The notes under the pieces are model-generated. The model was not told the DNA's origin and made no database searches. It was given only the letters and a program-made list of their open reading frames with translations. From the sequence record NC_061440.1: DNA of 64,000 nt. The stretch is one strand, 5' to 3'. Below, in pieces: positions 27,492 to 64,000 of this stretch; position 1 is the stretch's first letter; each line of letters starts with the position of its first letter. A program made the translations under genes and the position numbers.

Positions 27492-27537
27492 ATACGTGAG
27501 CGCAGTGCTCATTACAACTAACGCTGAGGAGCGTATC

Positions 27538-27987
27538 ATGACTACTTTATCTATCACTGATTTGAAAACCCCTGCTGAGTTTACTACTCACCTGACTTTC
27601 GGTCACATGGAAGAACTGCGGGCCAGCCTCGAACGCGCCTTAAATCGTGCCGACCTTGAGGTGTATGTTGATTGTGATTCTAACTACACACTCGAAGAAG
27701 CAAACACCGACGGTCCTGACCAGCTGGTGGGCGATCATGAATGTATTAACGTTCACGTTCGTTATGCAGGTATGTCGTTCGATGAAGCGACGGCGAAAGG
27801 CGTGTGGGATATTTTACTGCAAACCCCGCACGAAGATAACAGCATGTCCGAGTGGTCTAACTCATACATCATGTATGTGGCCGATGAAAACCTCGACGCG
27901 CTGGAAGAAGTGACGATAGAAAACGGGAATCCTCGTATGATGGAAACTCTCGTTGATCGTATTAACTACTGGCTGCCAAAACTCTAA
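27538..27987 (+). CDS. hypothetical acidic protein
   Basis: GAGG-loop RBS (ACGCT-GAGG-AGCGT) supports ATG 27538. Confidence 0.8.
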   Translation: MTTLSITDLKTPAEFTTHLTFGHMEELRASLERALNRADLEVYVDCDSNYTLEEANTDGPDQLVGDHECINVHVRYAGMSFDEATAKGVWDILLQTPHEDNSMSEWSNSYIMYVADENLDALEEVTIENGNPRMMETLVDRINYWLPKL

Positions 27988-27989
27988 GC

Positions 27990-28028
27990 GATTTGTGAAG
28001 GGCATTTGCGAGTGCCCTTTGAAAATCA
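27990..28028 (+). repeat. terminator-like cassette repeated at 28372..28412
   Basis: GATTTGTGAAGGGCATT-(TG or CCAA)-CGAGTGCCCTTTGAAAATCA. Confidence 0.9.
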
Positions 28029-28053
28029 AACACCATAAGCTGAGGAGCTTAAC

Positions 28054-28371
28054 ATGTCATCTTCTACCACTCTGACTTTCATCTTCCCAGAAATGACCAC
28101 TCTGGAAGTATCTATCGGTAATGGCATTGTGCCTGCGTATCTGGGTCTCGCAGAAAATAGAGACATAACATTCAGCGACGTTAAGGCGCTGCGTCTGATG
28201 GGTGACTCAAACATCGTGGGTGCCATGTCACGCTTCGACCAGTCGATGTTGAATCTGCTGATTGACCGTCACATCTCACATGAGAATGTTCGCTGCCGTG
28301 ACGCCATAGACGCGGGCACCGAGCACTTCCCGTCTACTTGTCTTTATCTGAAAGTAGCGCACCACCGCTAA
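28054..28371 (+). CDS. hypothetical protein (105 aa)
   Basis: GAGG-loop RBS. Confidence 0.75.
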   Translation: MSSSTTLTFIFPEMTTLEVSIGNGIVPAYLGLAENRDITFSDVKALRLMGDSNIVGAMSRFDQSMLNLLIDRHISHENVRCRDAIDAGTEHFPSTCLYLKVAHHR

Positions 28372-28436
28372 GATTTGTGAAGGGCATTCCAACGAGTGCC
28401 CTTTGAAAATCACAACCTGTTCTGAGGAGAACAACA

Positions 28437-28790
28437 ATGCCAGCAACTGAATTGCCTATCGACGCCCGTGCTTTTGATGACCTGAGCAATAACAACTTCC
28501 TGCAAGTGTGCAACGCGATCTCTTTCTGCGTGTCTCGCGGTGATCTTGAGTTTCGTCATCATATCAAAGGTCGCCACATCGACGTTGCGTATCGCGCTGG
28601 TGGTAACAACGTTTTTGGTATCAGCACCGTTCGCATCCTGATGCCGTCCGAAGTTCTGCGTGAAGATATCGTAGAAGACTTCGAAATCATTCACGGCGAT
28701 GCAATCATTCAGATTGAACGCCAGAAAGATTCGTTCTCGACGTTGCAACGTATCGCTGGTGCAGTCGAAGCATGTATGCCTAAGAAGTGA
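28437..28790 (+). CDS. hypothetical protein (117 aa)
   Basis: GAGG-loop RBS. Confidence 0.75.
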   Translation: MPATELPIDARAFDDLSNNNFLQVCNAISFCVSRGDLEFRHHIKGRHIDVAYRAGGNNVFGISTVRILMPSEVLREDIVEDFEIIHGDAIIQIERQKDSFSTLQRIAGAVEACMPKK

Positions 28791-28834
28791 TTGTTGCTCG
28801 CAGGTTCTTACGAGAGCCTGCTGTCAACATAACC

Positions 28835-28858
28835 CCATAAGCTGAGGAGCTTAACATG
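28835..28858 (+). repeat. 24-bp leader identical to 28033..28056
   Basis: CCATAAGCTGAGGAGCTTAACATG in both places. Confidence 0.95.
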
Positions 28859-41383: not shown

Positions 41384-42364
41384 ATGCGTTTTGGTTTCGC
41401 CTGCAAATTGCTTGACGCAAACAACAAACAGCCATTCACGAATAAGAGCCTTAGCTATAAACATTTCTCTGCGTTGTCTGCTGCTGACCAACATACGAAA
41501 CTGTTGGAAGTTGTCACGCATAACCTGACTTCATTGCTTGATATGATCAAGCACGTTGGTCGTCTGCGTACAGACCTGCGCATGTTTCGAATCACCAGTG
41601 AATTGTTGCCTCTGTACACTCACCCTAAAGTGTTTCACATGTACATGCGCCATGACGTTGTTACTATCACCGAATCGCTACTCGCCTTGTGTGGTGAAGC
41701 GGCTAGACGTCATGACGTGCGATTATCATTTCATCCAGGTCAGTTCACGGTACTCGCATCTGATCGACCAGATGTTGTCCAGAACTCAATAGCCGAACTT
41801 GAGTATCATGCGTACTGTGCCTATCACATGGGGTATGGTCGCCGCTTCCAAGACTTCAAGATCAACATTCACCTTAGCGGTAGACTTGGCGCTTCGGGAT
41901 TCAGGCAAGCGCATTCGAAACTTTCTGATCGCTGCCGGAACATGTTGACCGTAGAGAACGACGAAATCACTTCGAGCCTCGAAGATTGTTTAGCGCTGGC
42001 AGACATATGCCCGATCGTCCTCGACATTCATCATCACTGGGTAATGACTAACGAATACATACAACCGACCGACGACCGTGTTCAGCGTGTCATTGATTCT
42101 TGGCGAGGCGTTCGACCTGCTGCTCACTACTCTGTGTCAAAGCCTGAGTTTGTACCATCGCGTGGACTGCCCGACCAGAACAAGCTGTCCGCTAATCGAA
42201 TGCAGTTACGTGCTCATGCTGATTATTACCACAACGAAGACGTAAACGAGTGGGCCACTAGTTTCACTGATTTTGACCTGATGTGTGAGTCAAAAGCGAA
42301 AAATAGGGCTAGACTGAAACTGGCGTGTTTTAGCGTCAACTCTGCAAATAATTGGACAAAATGA
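41384..42364 (+). CDS. uvsE: UV damage endonuclease UvsE/UVDE
   Basis: GFACK, MFRITSELLP, RLSFHPGQF, INIH, LTVENDE, VLDIHHH, AHYS, RAHADY, MCESKAK. Confidence 0.95.
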   Translation: MRFGFACKLLDANNKQPFTNKSLSYKHFSALSAADQHTKLLEVVTHNLTSLLDMIKHVGRLRTDLRMFRITSELLPLYTHPKVFHMYMRHDVVTITESLLALCGEAARRHDVRLSFHPGQFTVLASDRPDVVQNSIAELEYHAYCAYHMGYGRRFQDFKINIHLSGRLGASGFRQAHSKLSDRCRNMLTVENDEITSSLEDCLALADICPIVLDIHHHWVMTNEYIQPTDDRVQRVIDSWRGVRPAAHYSVSKPEFVPSRGLPDQNKLSANRMQLRAHADYYHNEDVNEWATSFTDFDLMCESKAKNRARLKLACFSVNSANNWTK

Positions 42365-42397
42365 GGCTTGTTTACGAAGGTAGCCCTGTGATACACT
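42338..42397 (+). promoter_or_regulatory. conserved phage promoter, copy 5
   Basis: AACTCTGCAAATAATTGG-ACAAAAT, 26 nt, TG-A-TACACT. Confidence 0.8.
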
Positions 42398-42449
42398 AGA
42401 TATGAGCGTTATCGCTCGTATAACTAGACTGACACAAGGAAATAAGACA

Positions 42450-42752
42450 ATGTTCAATACTACTACCATCGTAAAGAAATCTGGTGCTGCAAACGTTACC
42501 AATCATTCGTTCGGTATTACAGGTATCACGCCAACCAATCGCATTTCTTGCATCTGGCCTGGCGCTTTGGAGGTTCCGGCTGACATTAAACGTTGGTGCC
42601 GTGCTAACGAAATCATTAATGACCTTGACGCTTACATGCGTGTTCGTTTTAAAGGTCGTCGTGCTGATATCCTGAACTTGGTTGCTCGTCATCTGGCACC
42701 AAACAATCCTGAACTGGCTGTGCGTATTCTTGCAACTATCACTGAGGCCTAA
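42450..42752 (+). CDS. hypothetical protein
   Basis: AAGGA RBS; first gene after the promoter. Confidence 0.75.
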   Translation: MFNTTTIVKKSGAANVTNHSFGITGITPTNRISCIWPGALEVPADIKRWCRANEIINDLDAYMRVRFKGRRADILNLVARHLAPNNPELAVRILATITEA

Positions 42753-58249: not shown

Positions 58250-58275
58250 AGCAGGCAGTGTAGTAGCTGCCTGCT
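58250..58275. terminator. hairpin
   Basis: AGCAGGCAG...CTGCCTGCT. Confidence 0.6.
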
Positions 58276-58288
58276 ATCTGCGAAGTAT

Positions 58289-58342
58289 GCAGAAAACTGG
58301 ACAAAATCGTGGTTGTTATCTGAAAGCAACCTATGCTATACT
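58289..58342 (+). promoter_or_regulatory. conserved phage promoter, copy 10
   Basis: GCAGAAAACTGG-ACAAAAT-CGTGGTTGT, 26 nt spacer, TG-C-TATACT. Confidence 0.8.
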
Positions 58343-58405
58343 TAATGCAGACGCAATATCGCGTCGGCAAGCAAATCAAACAACAAATACTGAGGAGTAT
58401 TAATC

Positions 58406-60016
58406 ATGGCACGTCTGGAAACTAACACTAACCTGGTTGGCAAAACTATCGTCCTGCTGAACGGCACCAAATCTAAAATCGAAGATGCAATCGCGTCTGG
58501 TTATAAAGTGAAGGGCCAGTCAAAACGTATCGCCACCCGCTGCGTCATCAAAGAAGGTTCTCACTTCCGCGAAATTGAGCGCATGAACATGAGCCAGCTG
58601 GAAGATACTGGCGAAGGTTACGTTAAACTGAAAGATGCTAAAGCGTCGGGTAAGAAAGCTGGCGCCAAAGAGAAAGAGCCGAAAGCGTCTGGCAAGAAGA
58701 CTGGCAGCAAAGCTACTGCCAAAGAGAAAGAGCCGAAAGTTCGTCGTAAGTCTTCTAAAGAGCAAGGCGATGAGTATCAGGCTCTGGCGAAAGAAATCAT
58801 CAAAGGCGGCAAACGTGCTGCGCCAGTTGAAATCGACGAGATCGATGGCGACCTGACTGATACTGTTGCTCAACGTCTGGTGGACGTGCTGAACAATACC
58901 GAAATCGCCAAGCTGTGCGCTGACAACAAAACGCCGATCGCTAACGCTATCGAAGTTGCTTACGGCGCTGAGTTCGCACCTGAAACAAACGTCATGCAAA
59001 TCACGCTGAGCCTGCAATACGCGAAGCCTGTTAAAACGCAGTCATCTTCTACGCTGGAAAACGCCGATGCAATCGCGGCCCGTGCTAAGAAAATGATCGC
59101 GCCTAAGCTGTCTAAGAAACTCGCTAAGGCGATTCGTGAAGCGTTCGGTCTGGAAGACGCCGCCGAGCTTGAAGCTGGTACCGTGTTGTTGTCTGATGGC
59201 GCTGAGTTCGTCTTCTGCGGCGAGAGCGCGAAGCACCTCGGCAAAGCGTTGCTGTATGTTGTAGAGACCGACAAGTTCAAATCTGTTGTAGGCTCTGCGC
59301 TGGCTGATTACGAAATTGGTCAAGAAGAGGAAGAGGAAGAGGAAGAAGAAGACTTCGAGGAAGAAGAGTCTGAGGAAGAAGAAGAGGAAGAGGAAGAAGA
59401 AGAGGAGGAAGAAGACGGCGAAGAAGAAGACGGCGAAGAAGAAGACGGCGAGTCTGACGATACTGAATACCAGTATGTGGCCGTGACCAAAGATCATACC
59501 AACATGATCAACAAGAAAGTCACCGCTAAGTATCACGCCGCGCTGGCTGAACGCTTCAACACAACCGAAGAAGCTCTGGTCCCTGGCCTCGTGTTGACTG
59601 ACGGGGAAACAACGTTCGCTTACCTGGGCTGTGATAGCAAAGGTGGTCTGCTGGTCATCGACGTTGAGGCTGAGGAGAACGAAGAAGACGTTCTGCTGTA
59701 CAGCAAAGCCGATATCAAAGAACTGACCGACTTCAATCCTGTGCTGGATGACGTAGAAGGCGCTGCTGATGATGAAGGCGAAGAAGAAGACGGCGAAGAA
59801 GATCTGGACGAAGAAGACGGCGAAGAAGATCTGGACGAAGAAGACGGCGAAGAAGAAGAAGACGACGAAGACTTCGACTTCGATGATGTTCCTGCCGTTG
59901 ACTTGAAAGATCTGTCCGAAGACGAACTGCGTGACCGTGTCGTTGAAGCCGGCCTGACCACCGTGCGTAAAGCTGACAAAATGAACGCGGCTCAACTGCG
60001 CAAGCTCCTGAAATAA
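58406..60016 (+). CDS. highly acidic modular protein (536 aa), paralog of 60100..61350
   Basis: Poly-E/D tracts; two copies of an internal domain; C-terminal Rho-N-like helix pair. Confidence 0.85.
   Translation: MARLETNTNLVGKTIVLLNGTKSKIEDAIASGYKVKGQSKRIATRCVIKEGSHFREIERMNMSQLEDTGEGYVKLKDAKASGKKAGAKEKEPKASGKKTGSKATAKEKEPKVRRKSSKEQGDEYQALAKEIIKGGKRAAPVEIDEIDGDLTDTVAQRLVDVLNNTEIAKLCADNKTPIANAIEVAYGAEFAPETNVMQITLSLQYAKPVKTQSSSTLENADAIAARAKKMIAPKLSKKLAKAIREAFGLEDAAELEAGTVLLSDGAEFVFCGESAKHLGKALLYVVETDKFKSVVGSALADYEIGQEEEEEEEEEDFEEEESEEEEEEEEEEEEEEDGEEEDGEEEDGESDDTEYQYVAVTKDHTNMINKKVTAKYHAALAERFNTTEEALVPGLVLTDGETTFAYLGCDSKGGLLVIDVEAEENEEDVLLYSKADIKELTDFNPVLDDVEGAADDEGEEEDGEEDLDEEDGEEDLDEEDGEEEEDDEDFDFDDVPAVDLKDLSEDELRDRVVEAGLTTVRKADKMNAAQLRKLLK
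59408..59452 (+). repeat. 15-bp tandem repeat x3 (EEDGE)
   Basis: GAAGAAGACGGCGAA units. Confidence 0.85.
59783..59856 (+). repeat. 27-bp tandem repeat x2.7 (EEDGEEDLD)
   Basis: GAAGAAGACGGCGAAGAAGATCTGGAC units. Confidence 0.9.
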
Positions 60017-60041
60017 ACCTGTAGTATCGCAACACTGAATA

Positions 60042-60068
60042 ATGTACGCCTCAGACAGGGGCGTACAT
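60042..60068. terminator. hairpin
   Basis: ATGTACGCC...GGCGTACAT. Confidence 0.55.
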
Positions 60069-60099
60069 CTGACAACTAAGCTGATTGAGGAATCACACT

Positions 60100-61350
60100 A
60101 TGTCAAACGCAAACAAAATTCTGCTTAACGCCCGTGTTCGTCGTACTGATGGCACCATCACTTACATCAACAAAGTAAACGCTAACGGTTATAGCACCGA
60201 CGCGAAAGGTCCTCAAATCCCTGTGAAGCGCATTGTCTTTGCAGGCAAGATGTTGAAAGAGATTGCGGAGCCGTTCGCAAAAGGCGAGTACGTGATTGTG
60301 CAGGGTGTCGCTGTGAAGTTGAACAAGCGCCAGCAACGTGAACTGGCTGATGGTACTCTCGACGAGAAAGCGCTGCGTCCTGAGTTTGGCCGTTTGGCTA
60401 TCATCGACCCTGAAACAGGCAAAGCAACTGACGGCAAGAAAGTGAAGCCGAAAGCTGATAAGAAAGACGGCGGCCTGAAAGCTACGCGCAAGCATAGCGG
60501 CGATACCAGCACGAAGAAAGAGCGCAAAGCTGAGAAGGCGAATCTGAAAGACGACCTTGACTTCATTCAGTCAGACAAGATTGACCGTAAAGCTGAACTT
60601 GTCAAGCTCCTCGACGGCTCTATCGCTGACGCGAATACGAAAGAGCGCCGTAAGCAATTGTCCGAAGCGTTTGACATGGACTGGAAAGATCTTAAAAAAC
60701 ACGGCGGTAAAGGTGTTGTCAAACATCTTGGTCGCAAGGCCGCACAAAGCGCCGTTGACCGTCTGTCTGCTACGCTGACGCAAGACGCATTCATCAAACA
60801 AATGCCGGCTGAGTTGAAGCGCCTGATTCAAGATCGTCGTCTGGTTCTGAATAAGCGCCAGATTGAAGCTGTACTCTCTGCATTGGGTCTGGACGTTAAG
60901 TTCTACGCCATCGCAATGCAAACGCTGCTGGGTAACCTGTCGCTCGCTGTAGACGACACGGCCGTGAATCCCAAAGCAGGTAAGAAAGCAAAGAAGCGCA
61001 AACCAGCAAAGCCTGAGTATGCGTCCGATAAAGAAATAAAGCGCCGTATCAAAAAGATGAAAGTCAGTTTGATCATGCCTCCTAAGAGCGAAATCAAAAC
61101 GGCTAAAGCCCACTTGAAACAGGCGAAAGCCATTCTCGCCGACAAGCTGGGTATCTCGTCGAAAGATATCAAGCGTGGCCTGATCGTGCACCACAAGAAC
61201 GGCGTTGACTACATGTTCGTTGCGTGTGACCTGCGCGGACCAATCTTCATCGACAAAGATGGCGATCCGTCTGTGTATACCTACGCCAACCTCGAATCGA
61301 CTTTCGACTTCACGCTGGCGAAATCTTCTGAGCTGGATGAGGCTGTATGA
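60100..61350 (+). CDS. Lys-rich basic modular protein, paralog of 58406..60016
   Basis: GAGG-loop RBS supports ATG 60100; shared N- and C-terminal domains. Confidence 0.85.
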   Translation: MSNANKILLNARVRRTDGTITYINKVNANGYSTDAKGPQIPVKRIVFAGKMLKEIAEPFAKGEYVIVQGVAVKLNKRQQRELADGTLDEKALRPEFGRLAIIDPETGKATDGKKVKPKADKKDGGLKATRKHSGDTSTKKERKAEKANLKDDLDFIQSDKIDRKAELVKLLDGSIADANTKERRKQLSEAFDMDWKDLKKHGGKGVVKHLGRKAAQSAVDRLSATLTQDAFIKQMPAELKRLIQDRRLVLNKRQIEAVLSALGLDVKFYAIAMQTLLGNLSLAVDDTAVNPKAGKKAKKRKPAKPEYASDKEIKRRIKKMKVSLIMPPKSEIKTAKAHLKQAKAILADKLGISSKDIKRGLIVHHKNGVDYMFVACDLRGPIFIDKDGDPSVYTYANLESTFDFTLAKSSELDEAV

Positions 61351-61730
61351 CAAATAACGAAATACTCCTGTCTGGTATGTTTGCTCAACTGTATGCGCGG
61401 CTGGTAACGGCCGCAATACTGAAAACGCATGTGTTCTATTCTGACTTGGCTCCGATAGTATTCGGCATCCAACTGTCCGAAGTGAGCACTGCGCAATATG
61501 ACGCTCTGTGGAGTTTAGTAGCGACTTCCATGAGCGTCGATATCTCGCACGGAAGAGCACCGCTTGCTGCGCTCTATGTGTCGCGGTCATCTGATGATAA
61601 GAAGCCGAGTCGCAAGTTCTTCCGTGAGTATCACAAGATTACAGGCAAGCATCTGTCGGACAAAGAGTGGCAAGCACTCGTCCAGCAGGTGTACACTCAA
61701 TACGAATCAAATCTCCGAGAGCCATCATGA
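61347..61730 (+). CDS. hypothetical protein (127 aa)
   Basis: ATGA overlap. Confidence 0.65.
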   Translation: MTNNEILLSGMFAQLYARLVTAAILKTHVFYSDLAPIVFGIQLSEVSTAQYDALWSLVATSMSVDISHGRAPLAALYVSRSSDDKKPSRKFFREYHKITGKHLSDKEWQALVQQVYTQYESNLREPS

Positions 61731-62188
61731 AAAAAGCAAAGGTAGTAATTAGTCGTGGTGGATATCGACCGGCCTCCCACGAAGAAGCACAAAAGCTGGT
61801 GGTCGAAATGTTGTTAGCTTCAATCGGCGTTGACCCTACTATACTGAGCCAACAAATGCTGTTGAACGTTGCGAACTATAACTTCCTGACGTCAATCGCA
61901 GATACAGGCAAAGCAAATAACGCGAACCAGACAACTCTGCATAAAACTGTAAAAGAACTTAATGCGTTTTGTAGATTGCACAAGATTCCGCTGGGCTTGC
62001 TAATTATGCCCCATACATCGGCTAGTGATTATGCTGGTGATGAGGTTGTAGCGATTCCATGGGAGCATGTGCTTAAAAACACATTAAGCCAGAACGCTGT
62101 CAATTCCCTGTTCCAAACAGTCGAAGCTGATGGCTATCCGCAGTTTGTGACTGACGCGAAAACAGTAGAGGAATACAATGTTTTATGA
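61727..62188 (+). CDS. hypothetical protein
   Basis: ATGA overlap at 61727. Confidence 0.65.
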   Translation: MKKAKVVISRGGYRPASHEEAQKLVVEMLLASIGVDPTILSQQMLLNVANYNFLTSIADTGKANNANQTTLHKTVKELNAFCRLHKIPLGLLIMPHTSASDYAGDEVVAIPWEHVLKNTLSQNAVNSLFQTVEADGYPQFVTDAKTVEEYNVL

Positions 62189-63458
62189 TCACGTATTCAA
62201 CCACGACGAAAAGCTAACGCTCTTGTCGGTGGCTGAGTCTAAATTCCTGGTGCGGCTCGACTGCCCTGATTACTTGAAGAAGTCGAAGCACTCAATTGAG
62301 ATTCGCCACACTGTAACGAACCGCGGCGAGCAACGTCGAAGCGGTGTTGTGAATACAACCTTTGTTCCGCGTATTCATACTGCAACCGTTCAGCGTTTGG
62401 TGCGTGAAGTTCGTGACAATGCTAACGTTAGTTCTGCGAACAGCCTAGCCGCGTTGTTCGAACTTGGTCTGGGTGTGCCTAAGCAAAAGGACATTGCAAC
62501 GTACCTGCGAGACTACTCGCGTGATAACGATAAGAAGGGCGTGGGCATCAAATATATCCGCAAACTGATTAACGAGTATCATCGCAAGCACCGTCATAGT
62601 TTTGCAGGAAGTCGCTGGCTGATGCCTGCTGTGTACACCGCGAACTTGCTGAACATGCAGTCATTCATTCATCTGAAAGAAGACGGCTACAGCAAGAAGG
62701 TCAAAGTGCCTGACGGTCTGCCTGTTGTTCTGATCTACCAGAACACGAACCACGCCGAAGCTGAGTTCTCTTTGTGTGACGCGTTTGCGATTAGCCCACT
62801 GGGTTATCCGATGCCGTTCGCCCAGATTGCTCTGCGTCCTGAGTTCAAGGCTGCACCGAAGACCTTCCGTTCTAAAGCGTTACGCGGCAAAGGTATGTAT
62901 AGCATGGTGATGGGTATCATGCACTGGGAGAACGGCGATGCACTGTCGAACTTCCGTGAACTGATGGCTATCGACGACGAGCCGTATCTGACTCTGCTGG
63001 GCGATGAGCAGTACGCTGACCGTCGCAGCCCTGAATATCAGGCTCTGCTGGACAAACGTGCTGAGTTCCATGAGCAACGCCATGAGCATAACGAAGCGAT
63101 TGCGAAGTATGGCAACACGACCCGTACGCTCAAGCCTAAGCAGGTGGAACGACTCGAACGTGCGGAAGCCTTCTTCAAAGAACGCAAAGCGTTTATGGAC
63201 GAGTTTGATAAGTTCGAGAAGAAAGAGAACCATCACGCTGCGAAGAAATTCGCTGTGGCCCGAGCGCAGTTTGCTGCCGTTGATTGTGGTACCGTTATCG
63301 ACCGTTCAACCTACATGGCGGTTGCTTCCGGCCTTGATACTGTAAACAAGATTCTCACGAAGTGGGGATTTACGACGGTCGACACTGTTAATAGTAGTTT
63401 GAAGAAGTCTATCCTTACATACGACCCAACGACCGCTACTCGCGTCTGGTCTGTGTAA
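62178..63458 (+). CDS. hypothetical basic protein (426 aa)
   Basis: GAGGA RBS; long ORF. Confidence 0.8.
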   Translation: MFYDHVFNHDEKLTLLSVAESKFLVRLDCPDYLKKSKHSIEIRHTVTNRGEQRRSGVVNTTFVPRIHTATVQRLVREVRDNANVSSANSLAALFELGLGVPKQKDIATYLRDYSRDNDKKGVGIKYIRKLINEYHRKHRHSFAGSRWLMPAVYTANLLNMQSFIHLKEDGYSKKVKVPDGLPVVLIYQNTNHAEAEFSLCDAFAISPLGYPMPFAQIALRPEFKAAPKTFRSKALRGKGMYSMVMGIMHWENGDALSNFRELMAIDDEPYLTLLGDEQYADRRSPEYQALLDKRAEFHEQRHEHNEAIAKYGNTTRTLKPKQVERLERAEAFFKERKAFMDEFDKFEKKENHHAAKKFAVARAQFAAVDCGTVIDRSTYMAVASGLDTVNKILTKWGFTTVDTVNSSLKKSILTYDPTTATRVWSV

Positions 63459-63482: not shown

Positions 63483-64000
63483 ATGTCATCTAATACTAAT
63501 AATCTGGGCGCTGCTGCAACATTCGGCTCTGAGACTCAAAAGCAATTGAACGACCAACAACGTCGTGCTCATTCTGCTGAGTCGGGCCACGTAAACAAAT
63601 GTACCATCGTTGTACTGACTTCCCTGAATGCCAACAATCGTTTCTCGTACATGTCTGCCGACGAGCAACTGCGTGAACACGATATCGTGGGCAAAGTAAT
63701 GGACCGTCTGCCTGGTTTGATCGAACGTGCGTCTGGCGTTTCTTCTGACCCAAACAGTGCGTACTACATTCTGCATCCGAACAACGGCGTGCCGACCCGC
63801 ATCGACGAGCGCATCAAAATCGGTGAAGCTGATTCTGTCATCGTTTCATATACTGTAAATAAAGCAGTGTCAGAAATGTATGGCAGTTTGTCACTGGCCC
63901 TGTTTAGTGCTGGCGAAGGTGATATCGCAGACCTCGCGGCTGAGTATGGTATTCACTCCATCTCAATCGTTGAAGAGGCGAAAGCGCCTGACTACATCAA
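63483..64000 (+). CDS. hypothetical protein, truncated by the window end
   Basis: Read by hand: MSSNTNNLGAAATFGSETQKQL... open to 64000; GAGG-loop RBS. Confidence 0.8.
   Translation, partial: MSSNTNNLGAAATFGSETQKQLNDQQRRAHSAESGHVNKCTIVVLTSLNANNRFSYMSADEQLREHDIVGKVMDRLPGLIERASGVSSDPNSAYYILHPNNGVPTRIDERIKIGEADSVIVSYTVNKAVSEMYGSLSLALFSAGEGDIADLAAEYGIHSISIVEEAKAPDYI

Follow-up and report, generated by a model that had tools for sequence, protein, structure and literature searches.

Adjacent, oppositely charged and anciently diverged paralogs in the Erwinia jumbo phage pEa_SNUABM_22, a possible DNA-associated pair

The subject of this analysis is a pair of adjacent + strand genes, pEaSNUABM22_00325 (gene A) and pEaSNUABM22_00326 (gene B), which together occupy positions 58406 to 61350 of a 64,000-nucleotide stretch of sequence record NC_061440.1 (hereafter the window; all positions refer to it unless genome positions are indicated, and neighboring genes are cited by the numerical end of their locus tag). 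The window is 100% identical to genome positions 186,001-250,000 of Erwinia phage pEa_SNUABM_22 (MZ443785; genus Alexandravirus; 265,146 bp), a member of the PaBG/Lu11/NCTB/Dickeya/Erwinia group of jumbo myoviruses (PMC7412058). In PaBG-like jumbo phages, orphans account for about 70% of the gene content (PMC7412058). Both genes are labeled "hypothetical protein" in GenBank, with which the ATG starts used here agree, and each matches a PHROG family of unknown function, namely, phrog_33433 for A (E 1.9e-199 over residues 1-535) and phrog_32501 for B (E 3.7e-163 over residues 1-416), while Pfam returned only chance low-complexity matches for the two proteins. A preliminary description, drawn from the nucleotide sequence, had taken A and B for paralogs with the same domains but opposite charge.

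BLASTP revealed no significant similarity between A and B, so that a profile comparison was needed. Alignments of 27 orthologs of A and 27 orthologs of B were therefore compared profile to profile with hhalign, and residues 6-59 of A paired with residues 4-57 of B at a probability of 89.6% (E 1.9e-6 to 1.4e-8 across the whole and cut comparisons). When the alignments were split into nine regions and all region pairs were compared, the two N-terminal regions paired at 95.5% (E 1.4e-8), in the same stretches in which a common N domain had been proposed in the preliminary description. The second domain that it had placed twice in A and once in B was recovered as well (here termed R): R1 (228-276) and R2 (365-412) of A matched each other at 95.0% (E 3.8e-8), R2 matched the C terminus of B (B_R, 344-386) at 84.1% (E 7e-6), and R1 matched B_R at 45.7%. 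The remaining 30-odd region pairs stayed below 5%, with the exception of one internal B pair at 16%. Moreover, among the 3010 six-frame open reading frames (ORFs) of the whole genome, the best non-self match of the N-domain hidden Markov model (HMM) of either protein was the other protein. Significant cross-matches were also obtained in relatives. In a Yoloswag-like genome, the A N-domain HMM matched B at 5e-8 and the B_R HMM matched R2 of A (L007 A) at 4e-5, while the Dickeya phage JA29 protein in the slot of B was matched by both N-domain HMMs (1.4e-7 and 1.7e-11). The A-type protein of NCTB was matched by the B N-domain HMM at 3.5e-8, and the A proteins of JA29 and of a Yersinia phage were matched by the B_R HMM at 5e-7 and 5e-6, respectively. 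In addition, a Foldseek search of predicted viral structures with the model of B retrieved the A-type protein of NCTB (E 3.6e-6), and in AlphaFold2 (AF2) models the three R copies share one order of secondary structure, i.e., a helix, four strands, and a short helix. R1 of A and the R domain of B also picked the same segments of the structures 7sxi, 7a46, and 7n5d, but with Z scores of 4-5, which is the background level. Because the profile matches and the intermediate sequences from relatives link both families, these comparisons indicate that A and B are true, very old, and highly diverged paralogs.

The isoelectric points (pI) and net charges of the two proteins (Table 1) agree with the acidic and basic character described previously, and the sign of the net charge was opposite in all 54 orthologs, ranging from -53 to -84 over the orthologs of A and from +23 to +34 over those of B, at identities down to about 35-40%. 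However, the view of A as simply poly-acidic did not hold. Its residues 1-120 carry a net charge of +15 (+6 in the N domain, 1-60, and +9 in a disordered Lys/Ala-rich linker, 61-120), the two Asp/Glu (D/E) tracts carry -40 and -36, and the last 36 residues carry +2; A is a block polyampholyte, bipolar and not purely acidic. The positive charge of B lies mostly in two disordered linkers, 106-150 (+10) and 286-340 (+14), which had been recognized correctly as Lys rich. In composition and predicted disorder, these two linkers and residues 61-120 of A would fit Lys-rich tails of the histone H1/Hc1 kind, each having a predicted local distance difference test score (pLDDT) below 50, but no family-level match was obtained. 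Tandem Repeats Finder (TRF) detected a 15-bp array at 59330-59451 and an exact 27-bp array of 2.7 copies at 59783-59856 in gene A, corresponding to the repeats of the preliminary description, in which the arrays were said to be still expanding. Among four ~96%-identical phages, however, the indels of gene A, all of which fall inside the two acidic tracts, in frame and 3-15 nt long, comprise losses as well as gains, and gene B is 1251 nt long in all four. The acidic tracts are thus length polymorphic and in flux, not merely expanding.

Table 1. Features of the region around genes A and B, in window positions
Feature	Position	Strand	Remarks
Terminator-like 9-bp GC-rich hairpin, just 3' of the _00324 stop	58250..58275	+	Conserved in close relatives
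Candidate promoter region of A, conserved, sigma-70-like	58288..58342	+	Upstream block 58288-58307; -35 58313-58318; -10 58337-58342
Hairpin in the 5' untranslated region of A	58350..58365	+	Compensatory stem changes between lineages
Ribosome-binding site of A, 6-bp hairpin with GAGG in its loop	58386..58401	+	Stem covaries in JA29 and Yersinia phages
Gene A (pEaSNUABM22_00325)	58406..60016	+	536 aa; pI 4.31; net -77; phrog_33433
A, N-terminal beta-rich domain, residues 1-75, shared with B	58406..58630	+	hhalign 95.5%; AF2 strands 14-75, pLDDT 71-81; family search
A, disordered Lys/Ala-rich basic linker, residues 76-120	58631..58765	+	Degenerate 27-bp repeat
A, middle domain, residues 121-215 (helix and beta-hairpin)	58766..59050	+	A family specific; AF2
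A, repeat domain R1, residues 216-305 (helix, then 4-stranded sheet)	59051..59320	+	hhalign; AF2
A, acidic tract 1, residues 306-352, net -40	59321..59461	+	15-bp-type tandem repeats; length polymorphic
A, repeat domain R2, residues 353-445	59462..59740	+	hhalign; AF2; HMMs in relatives
A, acidic tract 2, residues 446-500, net -36	59741..59905	+	Exact 27-bp x 2.7 repeat; length polymorphic
A, C-terminal helix-extended-helix-like (SAP/LEM-like) motif, residues 501-536 (putative)	59906..60013	+	Also in _00323, _00324, _00333
11-bp GC-rich hairpin between A and B	60042..60068	+	Hairpin in almost every lineage, sequence differing each time
Ribosome-binding site of B, 5-bp hairpin with GAGG in its loop	60082..60095	+	Between-lineage comparison
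Gene B (pEaSNUABM22_00326)	60100..61350	+	416 aa; pI 9.85; net +31; phrog_32501
B, N-terminal domain, residues 1-85, homologous to that of A	60100..60354	+	B-specific extension; hhalign; AF2 model
B, disordered Lys-rich linker 1, residues 106-160	60415..60579	+	
B, helical middle domain, residues 161-285	60580..60954	+	B family specific
B, Lys-rich linker 2, residues 286-340, net +14	60955..61119	+	Leads into a capping helix
B, single R domain, residues 341-416	61120..61347	+	hhalign; AF2 model; HMMs in relatives
_00327, _00328, _00329 (basic, +13)	61347..63458	+	Mutually overlapping; after B in every relative
_00330, start	63483..64000	+	1001 aa; net -193; GAGG-in-loop ribosome-binding site; extends beyond the window

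An exhaustive profile search of 1.84 billion representatives with a combined N-domain alignment found 49 clusters, four of which consist of immunoglobulin (Ig)-like repeat proteins and are apparent false positives. In the remaining ~45 clusters, the N domain starts at or near residue 1, irrespective of the charge of the rest of the protein. About 30 of these are of A type, with lengths of 440-630 aa and pI values of 4.05-4.55. In these, a 40-residue window of basic character immediately follows the N domain, an acidic window of -19 to -37 comes later in the protein, and the acidic block is kept in place and in size at just 15-40% identity between the clusters. About 10 are of B type (250-390 aa, pI 9.5-10.4). 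None of the 38 true members of the family contained a Pfam domain, and the contigs on which members lie measure 168-311 kb and include a marine contig from Tara Oceans. These results indicate a small, uncharacterized family confined to PaBG/Lu11-like jumbo phages, in which the membership of PaBG itself is doubtful, given that its structural match is weak; a tblastn search for a PaBG homolog found none. A match to the Lsr2 dimerization domain was rejected as false positive: it occurred once, in P0087, a protein with Ig-like repeats, and the N-domain profile had no Lsr2 match in the PDB.

The N-domain tree, which is coarse because the alignment has only 64 columns, placed all B types, including the short JA type, which lacks the R domain, on one branch (support 98/88). 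NCTB, L005, L017, L018, and L020 carry an A-type gene alone, and at all 8 of the 8 loci with a B-type gene it lies directly 3' of the A-type gene. Considering the one B branch, the A-only relatives, and this invariant position, the duplication that gave rise to B from an A-like ancestor happened once and is lineage specific. The ancestral form is the A type, in which a basic beta-rich N domain is followed by a disordered tail rich in Lys, by the folded middle domain and R domains, by long D/E tracts, and by helix-extended-helix-like motifs. The duplicate retained the N domain, together with one R domain in most lineages, whereas its acidic tracts disappeared and linkers rich in Lys were acquired. 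Some B orthologs (P0056, P0065, P0067, and P0070) carry an insertion of ~50 residues (B alignment columns ~150-215) that repeats the adjacent downstream helical segment, which indicates a further internal duplication within the B family. Another B ortholog, P0061 (62% identity), is held by NCBI as a protein of Salmonella enterica serovar Infantis on a 266-kb contig and probably comes from a related jumbo phage within the Salmonella assembly.

A and B belong to one transcription unit. The candidate promoter of gene A scored 9 of 12 matches with a TG extension in our scan, and both its upstream block and its hexamers can be aligned among phages of the Alexandra, Y3, Yoloswag, JA29, and Yersinia types. 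The hairpin that follows A gives this gene a terminator-like or stabilizing structure at its 3' side, while B shares an ATGA stop/start overlap with _00327, and _00327, _00328, and _00329 overlap in turn, which links B in translation to the three genes that follow it. The ribosome-binding sites in GAGG loops that had been noticed upstream of A and B are real, and their stems show compensatory changes in relatives. Genome-wide, a perfect 5-bp hairpin with GAGG in its loop was found 3-9 nt ahead of an ATG at 10 sites vs 1.0 in shuffles, and 9 of the 10 sites lie on the + strand at 202-250 kb. Among the 10 are the sites of _00319, of _00330, and of four genes located at 27.5-28.8 kb of the window; the arrangement looks like a translation-initiation signature of one gene class. 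The corresponding window positions are 27521-28839, 55230, 58387, 60082, and 63465. The sole other copy of the promoter-plus-leader layout of A (an upstream block, sigma-70-like hexamers, and a small leader hairpin) lies at 42343-42430, just after a UvdE-like gene and before a small ORF starting at 42451.

The two genes head a module of charged proteins. The gene order A, B, ~130 aa, ~155 aa, ~420 aa (basic), and ~1000 aa (very acidic) was kept in all loci compared. In pEa_SNUABM_22, the net charges run -77 (A), +31 (B), +13 (_00329), -193 (_00330), +15 (_00332), -98 (_00333), and +27 (_00334), i.e., seven proteins within 14 kb. By net charge per residue, A, _00330, and _00333 fall in the lowest 1%-5% of the ORFs of the genome, with _00333 even under the 1st percentile. 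B, _00332, and _00334 belong to roughly the uppermost 5%, and _00329 (+3.1 per 100 aa) lies near the 75th percentile. The acidic/basic alternation recurred in NCTB, L017, L018, and L020, as in every relative inspected. The acidic protein _00330 (genome positions 249483-252488) has a pI of 4.05 and several D/E tracts, and its homologs follow the basic _00329-type gene in distant relatives. In the homolog of _00329 at L017:8564-9919, a match to the GapR DNA-binding domain remained sub-threshold (17.3 bits vs a cut-off of 22.6) and is not relied on here.

In the marine (Tara) contig L018, the position of B, two short ORFs downstream of the A-type gene, is occupied by an HU/IHF-domain protein (PF00216, E 3.9e-11, above the cut-off) with a net charge of +32 and a 60-residue Lys/Ala/Thr-rich N-terminal tail, and a PC4-like single-stranded DNA-binding protein is encoded near the same A-type gene (L018:8064-8579 for HU and L018:2021-2287 for the PC4-like gene). 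No PF00216 match was found in the whole genome of pEa_SNUABM_22, i.e., it has no HU gene, and B itself had no Pfam match to HU/IHF PF00216 and no HU domain. A and B are located on a + strand arm together with RecA, UvdE, and other non-structural genes, and in the relative Y3 the tail and baseplate genes are on the - strand. The UvdE gene lies ~1.3 kb upstream of the A-type gene in NCTB and L005 vs 16 kb in pEa_SNUABM_22 (41384-42364), suggesting that ~15 kb of genes were inserted or rearranged in between.

Three further genes were matched by an HMM of the last 51 residues of A, namely, _00333 at E 1e-7 to 1e-9, _00324, which lies upstream of A, at E 6e-6 to 3.5e-4, and _00323. Two copies of the motif are present in _00333 as well as in distant A-type proteins. 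_00333 (genome positions 254156-254953, outside the window) is a protein of 265 aa, flanked by _00332 and _00334, in which the two motifs are separated by ~90 residues of almost pure D/E. The AF2 model of the motif in A consists of short helices (505-514, 520-524, and 528-535; pLDDT 81-86) around an extended loop. The top Pfam matches of the motif copies were SAP, LEM, and Ish1, all of them helix-extended-helix families, and the likeness to these families would extend over ~35 residues, with two predicted helices around an extended loop and a similar pattern of Leu, Gly-Leu, and Lys/Arg; all scores lie below the curated cut-offs. The C-terminal motif of A is therefore called helix-extended-helix-like here, as a putative assignment.

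Foldseek and VIA searches of the PDB with both models found nothing above background, a profile search of PDB sequences with the N-domain and C-terminal motif profiles found nothing, and ESM Atlas gave no usable match for B or for _00329. A Tudor/SH3-like small beta-barrel for the N and R domains, for which Z >= 8 or Foldseek E <= 1e-3 was taken as the threshold, reached at best Z 4.2-5.6, with the best Foldseek E above 0.3. The pyrin/death-fold look of residues 158-230 of B (Z 5.8) was likewise discarded as within the noise for helical bundles.

Considering the paralogy, the charges, and the genomic context together, we tentatively favor the possibility that A and B are a DNA-associated, charge-complementary pair acting inside the cell, with B as the binder and the bipolar A as a self-inhibited binder or a polyanionic competitor. 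Both proteins would act on DNA within the infected cell and not in the virion. As with the tailed HU protein in the slot of L018, B would coat or compact DNA, by means of its Lys-rich linkers and its basic N-module, although the relation between B and HU/IHF proteins (including phage HU-like ones) is one of position and charge (net +31 with Lys-rich tails vs net +32), not of homology. A would bind DNA through the same basic head as B, and the ~100 residues of its D/E tracts would amount to a DNA-like polyanion. These tracts may fold back on the basic head of A in self-inhibition, as in HMGB1; alternatively, they may draw the basic segments of B and of the other basic proteins of the module away from DNA by competition, in which case A would be a chaperone or release factor. 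The conserved hairpin between the genes would set the A:B ratio, and the rest of the module (_00329, _00330, _00332, _00333, and _00334) would follow the same acidic/basic logic. The preliminary description had proposed a histone-like DNA-binding protein with its acidic chaperone, and this is partly supported: the two proteins are true paralogs, their opposite charge is kept down to ~35-40% identity, they share a transcription unit within an alternating module, and HU occupies the slot in L018. The term "acidic chaperone" nevertheless oversimplifies A, because A has the same basic N-module as B and a Lys-rich tail of its own, so that it may itself be a protein that acts on DNA and is held in check by its own D/E tracts.

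Known systems offer partial parallels for such a pair. D/E-repeat tails are known from HMGB1-type and other DNA-binding proteins, in which they can bend back onto the basic head and so tune the binding of DNA (PMC10250230). The layout of A is the same, with a basic head of +15 (1-120) followed by tracts of -40 and -36, but A has neither an HMG box nor homology to these proteins, it contains three extra folded domains and the helix-extended-helix-like motif, and its DNA binding is putative. In the case of histone H1/prothymosin-alpha and of the nucleoplasmin/Nap1 chaperones, a disordered polyanion competes with DNA for a polycationic binder (PMC10987829). A similar pairing of polycation and polyanion may apply to B and A, with the difference that A and B are phage-encoded paralogs from adjacent genes and share two folded domains.

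Several observations weigh against this favored pair. No domain of A or B had a confident known fold or Pfam match (Pfam, Foldseek, VIA, PDB, and, for B, ESM Atlas), so that DNA binding would have to be read from charge and context alone. The C-terminal motif of A missed the threshold for membership of the SAP/LEM/helix-extended-helix clan (SAP 14.6 vs 23.9 bits; LEM best E 0.022, in 3 of 11 copies; Ish1 17.3 vs 26.6 bits, for _00323). Moreover, the HU protein in the slot of B, the sole evidence linking that slot to DNA binding, occurs in one lineage only, and promoter-like matches in the region were no commoner than in shuffles; the candidate promoter of gene A is backed only by its conservation.

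Other explanations were weighed against the same evidence. A and B could be packaged internal head or ejection proteins, in which the shared N domain would target or anchor oppositely charged cargo into the prohead and B would neutralize the packaged DNA. The natural comparisons are the capsid-targeting sequence of the T4 internal proteins and the paralogous inner-body proteins of phiKZ-like phages, which like A and B are paralogous, adjacent, and highly charged and share an N-terminal module; A and B have no homology to them and lie on a non-structural genomic arm. The N domain at residue 1 in ~45 clusters regardless of the remaining charge, together with the very strong conservation of the first residues of A and B in the ortholog alignments, would agree with such targeting, and families of paralogous internal proteins are known to be packaged by jumbo phages (PMC7909554). 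We nevertheless regard packaging as distinctly unlikely, considering that A and B sit behind a sigma-70-like promoter on that non-structural + strand arm, that their slot-mate in the marine contig L018 is an HU protein, and that a strongly acidic 59-kDa protein would be odd beside tightly packed DNA. In addition, the 14 abundant PaBG virion proteins in the Coomassie-band table include none of ~48 kDa that would fit the weak, doubtful PaBG structural match. The promoter, which suggests early expression, would suit host-takeover factors with separate targets and no A-B partnership. A would then be a DNA-mimic decoy that sequesters DNA-binding proteins of the host, such as nucleoid proteins, restriction enzymes, or RNA polymerase, while the host chromosome would be condensed or silenced by B. 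Phages are well known to encode acidic mimics of DNA, e.g., SPO1 Gp44 (PMC8208478), and the rapid change of repeat length in the acidic tracts would fit an arms race. By composition, A shares the strong negative charge of T7 Ocr and SPO1 Gp44, but these known mimics are small, compact, and folded, whereas A is a multidomain protein of some 500 residues, the N-terminal quarter of which is basic. Moreover, the net charge of the tracts is kept within narrow limits across the family instead of diversifying, and the synteny of A, B, and the downstream genes is strict, which together leave takeover by separate targets improbable.

The alternation of charge could instead reflect scaffolds of a membrane-less replication or assembly compartment, in which the proteins of the module (A, B, _00329, _00330, _00332, _00333, and _00334) would form a complex coacervate concentrating phage DNA and enzymes. 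The seven proteins of extreme charge within 14 kb, the alternation kept in L017, L018, L020, and NCTB, and the long tracts predicted to be disordered are all compatible with such a compartment; since composition is its sole basis, we give it a low probability, and it overlaps the DNA-associated pair rather than excluding it. At the other extreme, the charge contrast might have no joint meaning, the copies having taken unrelated jobs after duplication and the D/E tracts being tolerated, slippage-prone filler. The instability of the tracts would agree with this, as would the loss of the R domain from the JA-type B proteins, which implies that the shared architecture is not obligatory. However, filler would hardly keep the position and size of the acidic block in ~30 clusters at 15-40% identity, and the net charges of A and of B vary little, so that this explanation appears very improbable.

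If the DNA-associated pair is extended to the whole module, this clade of jumbo phages without a phage nucleus might encode a polyelectrolyte "chromatin" kit, in which polycationic binders (B, _00329, _00332, and _00334, with HU in marine relatives) and polyanionic helix-extended-helix partners (A, _00330, and _00333) would form a charge-balanced condensate with DNA, and A and B would be binder and counter-ion derived from one gene. We consider this extension doubtful, though conceivable. The present work defines a conserved orphan module with a domain map and an evolutionary history and puts forward the idea of a phage-encoded, charge-complementary DNA-organizing system. If true, bacterial viruses would have a counterpart to the logic of histone/chaperone or H1/prothymosin pairs, and A and B would be a clean natural case in which gene duplication yielded a polycation on one side and a polyanion on the other. 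The unstable D/E repeats and the GAGG-in-loop ribosome-binding sites offer easy experimental handles.

As regards natural occurrence, 44% of the sampled words of window positions 58406-61350 were present in a phyllosphere metagenome run, suggesting that leaf surfaces harbor a close relative of this phage.

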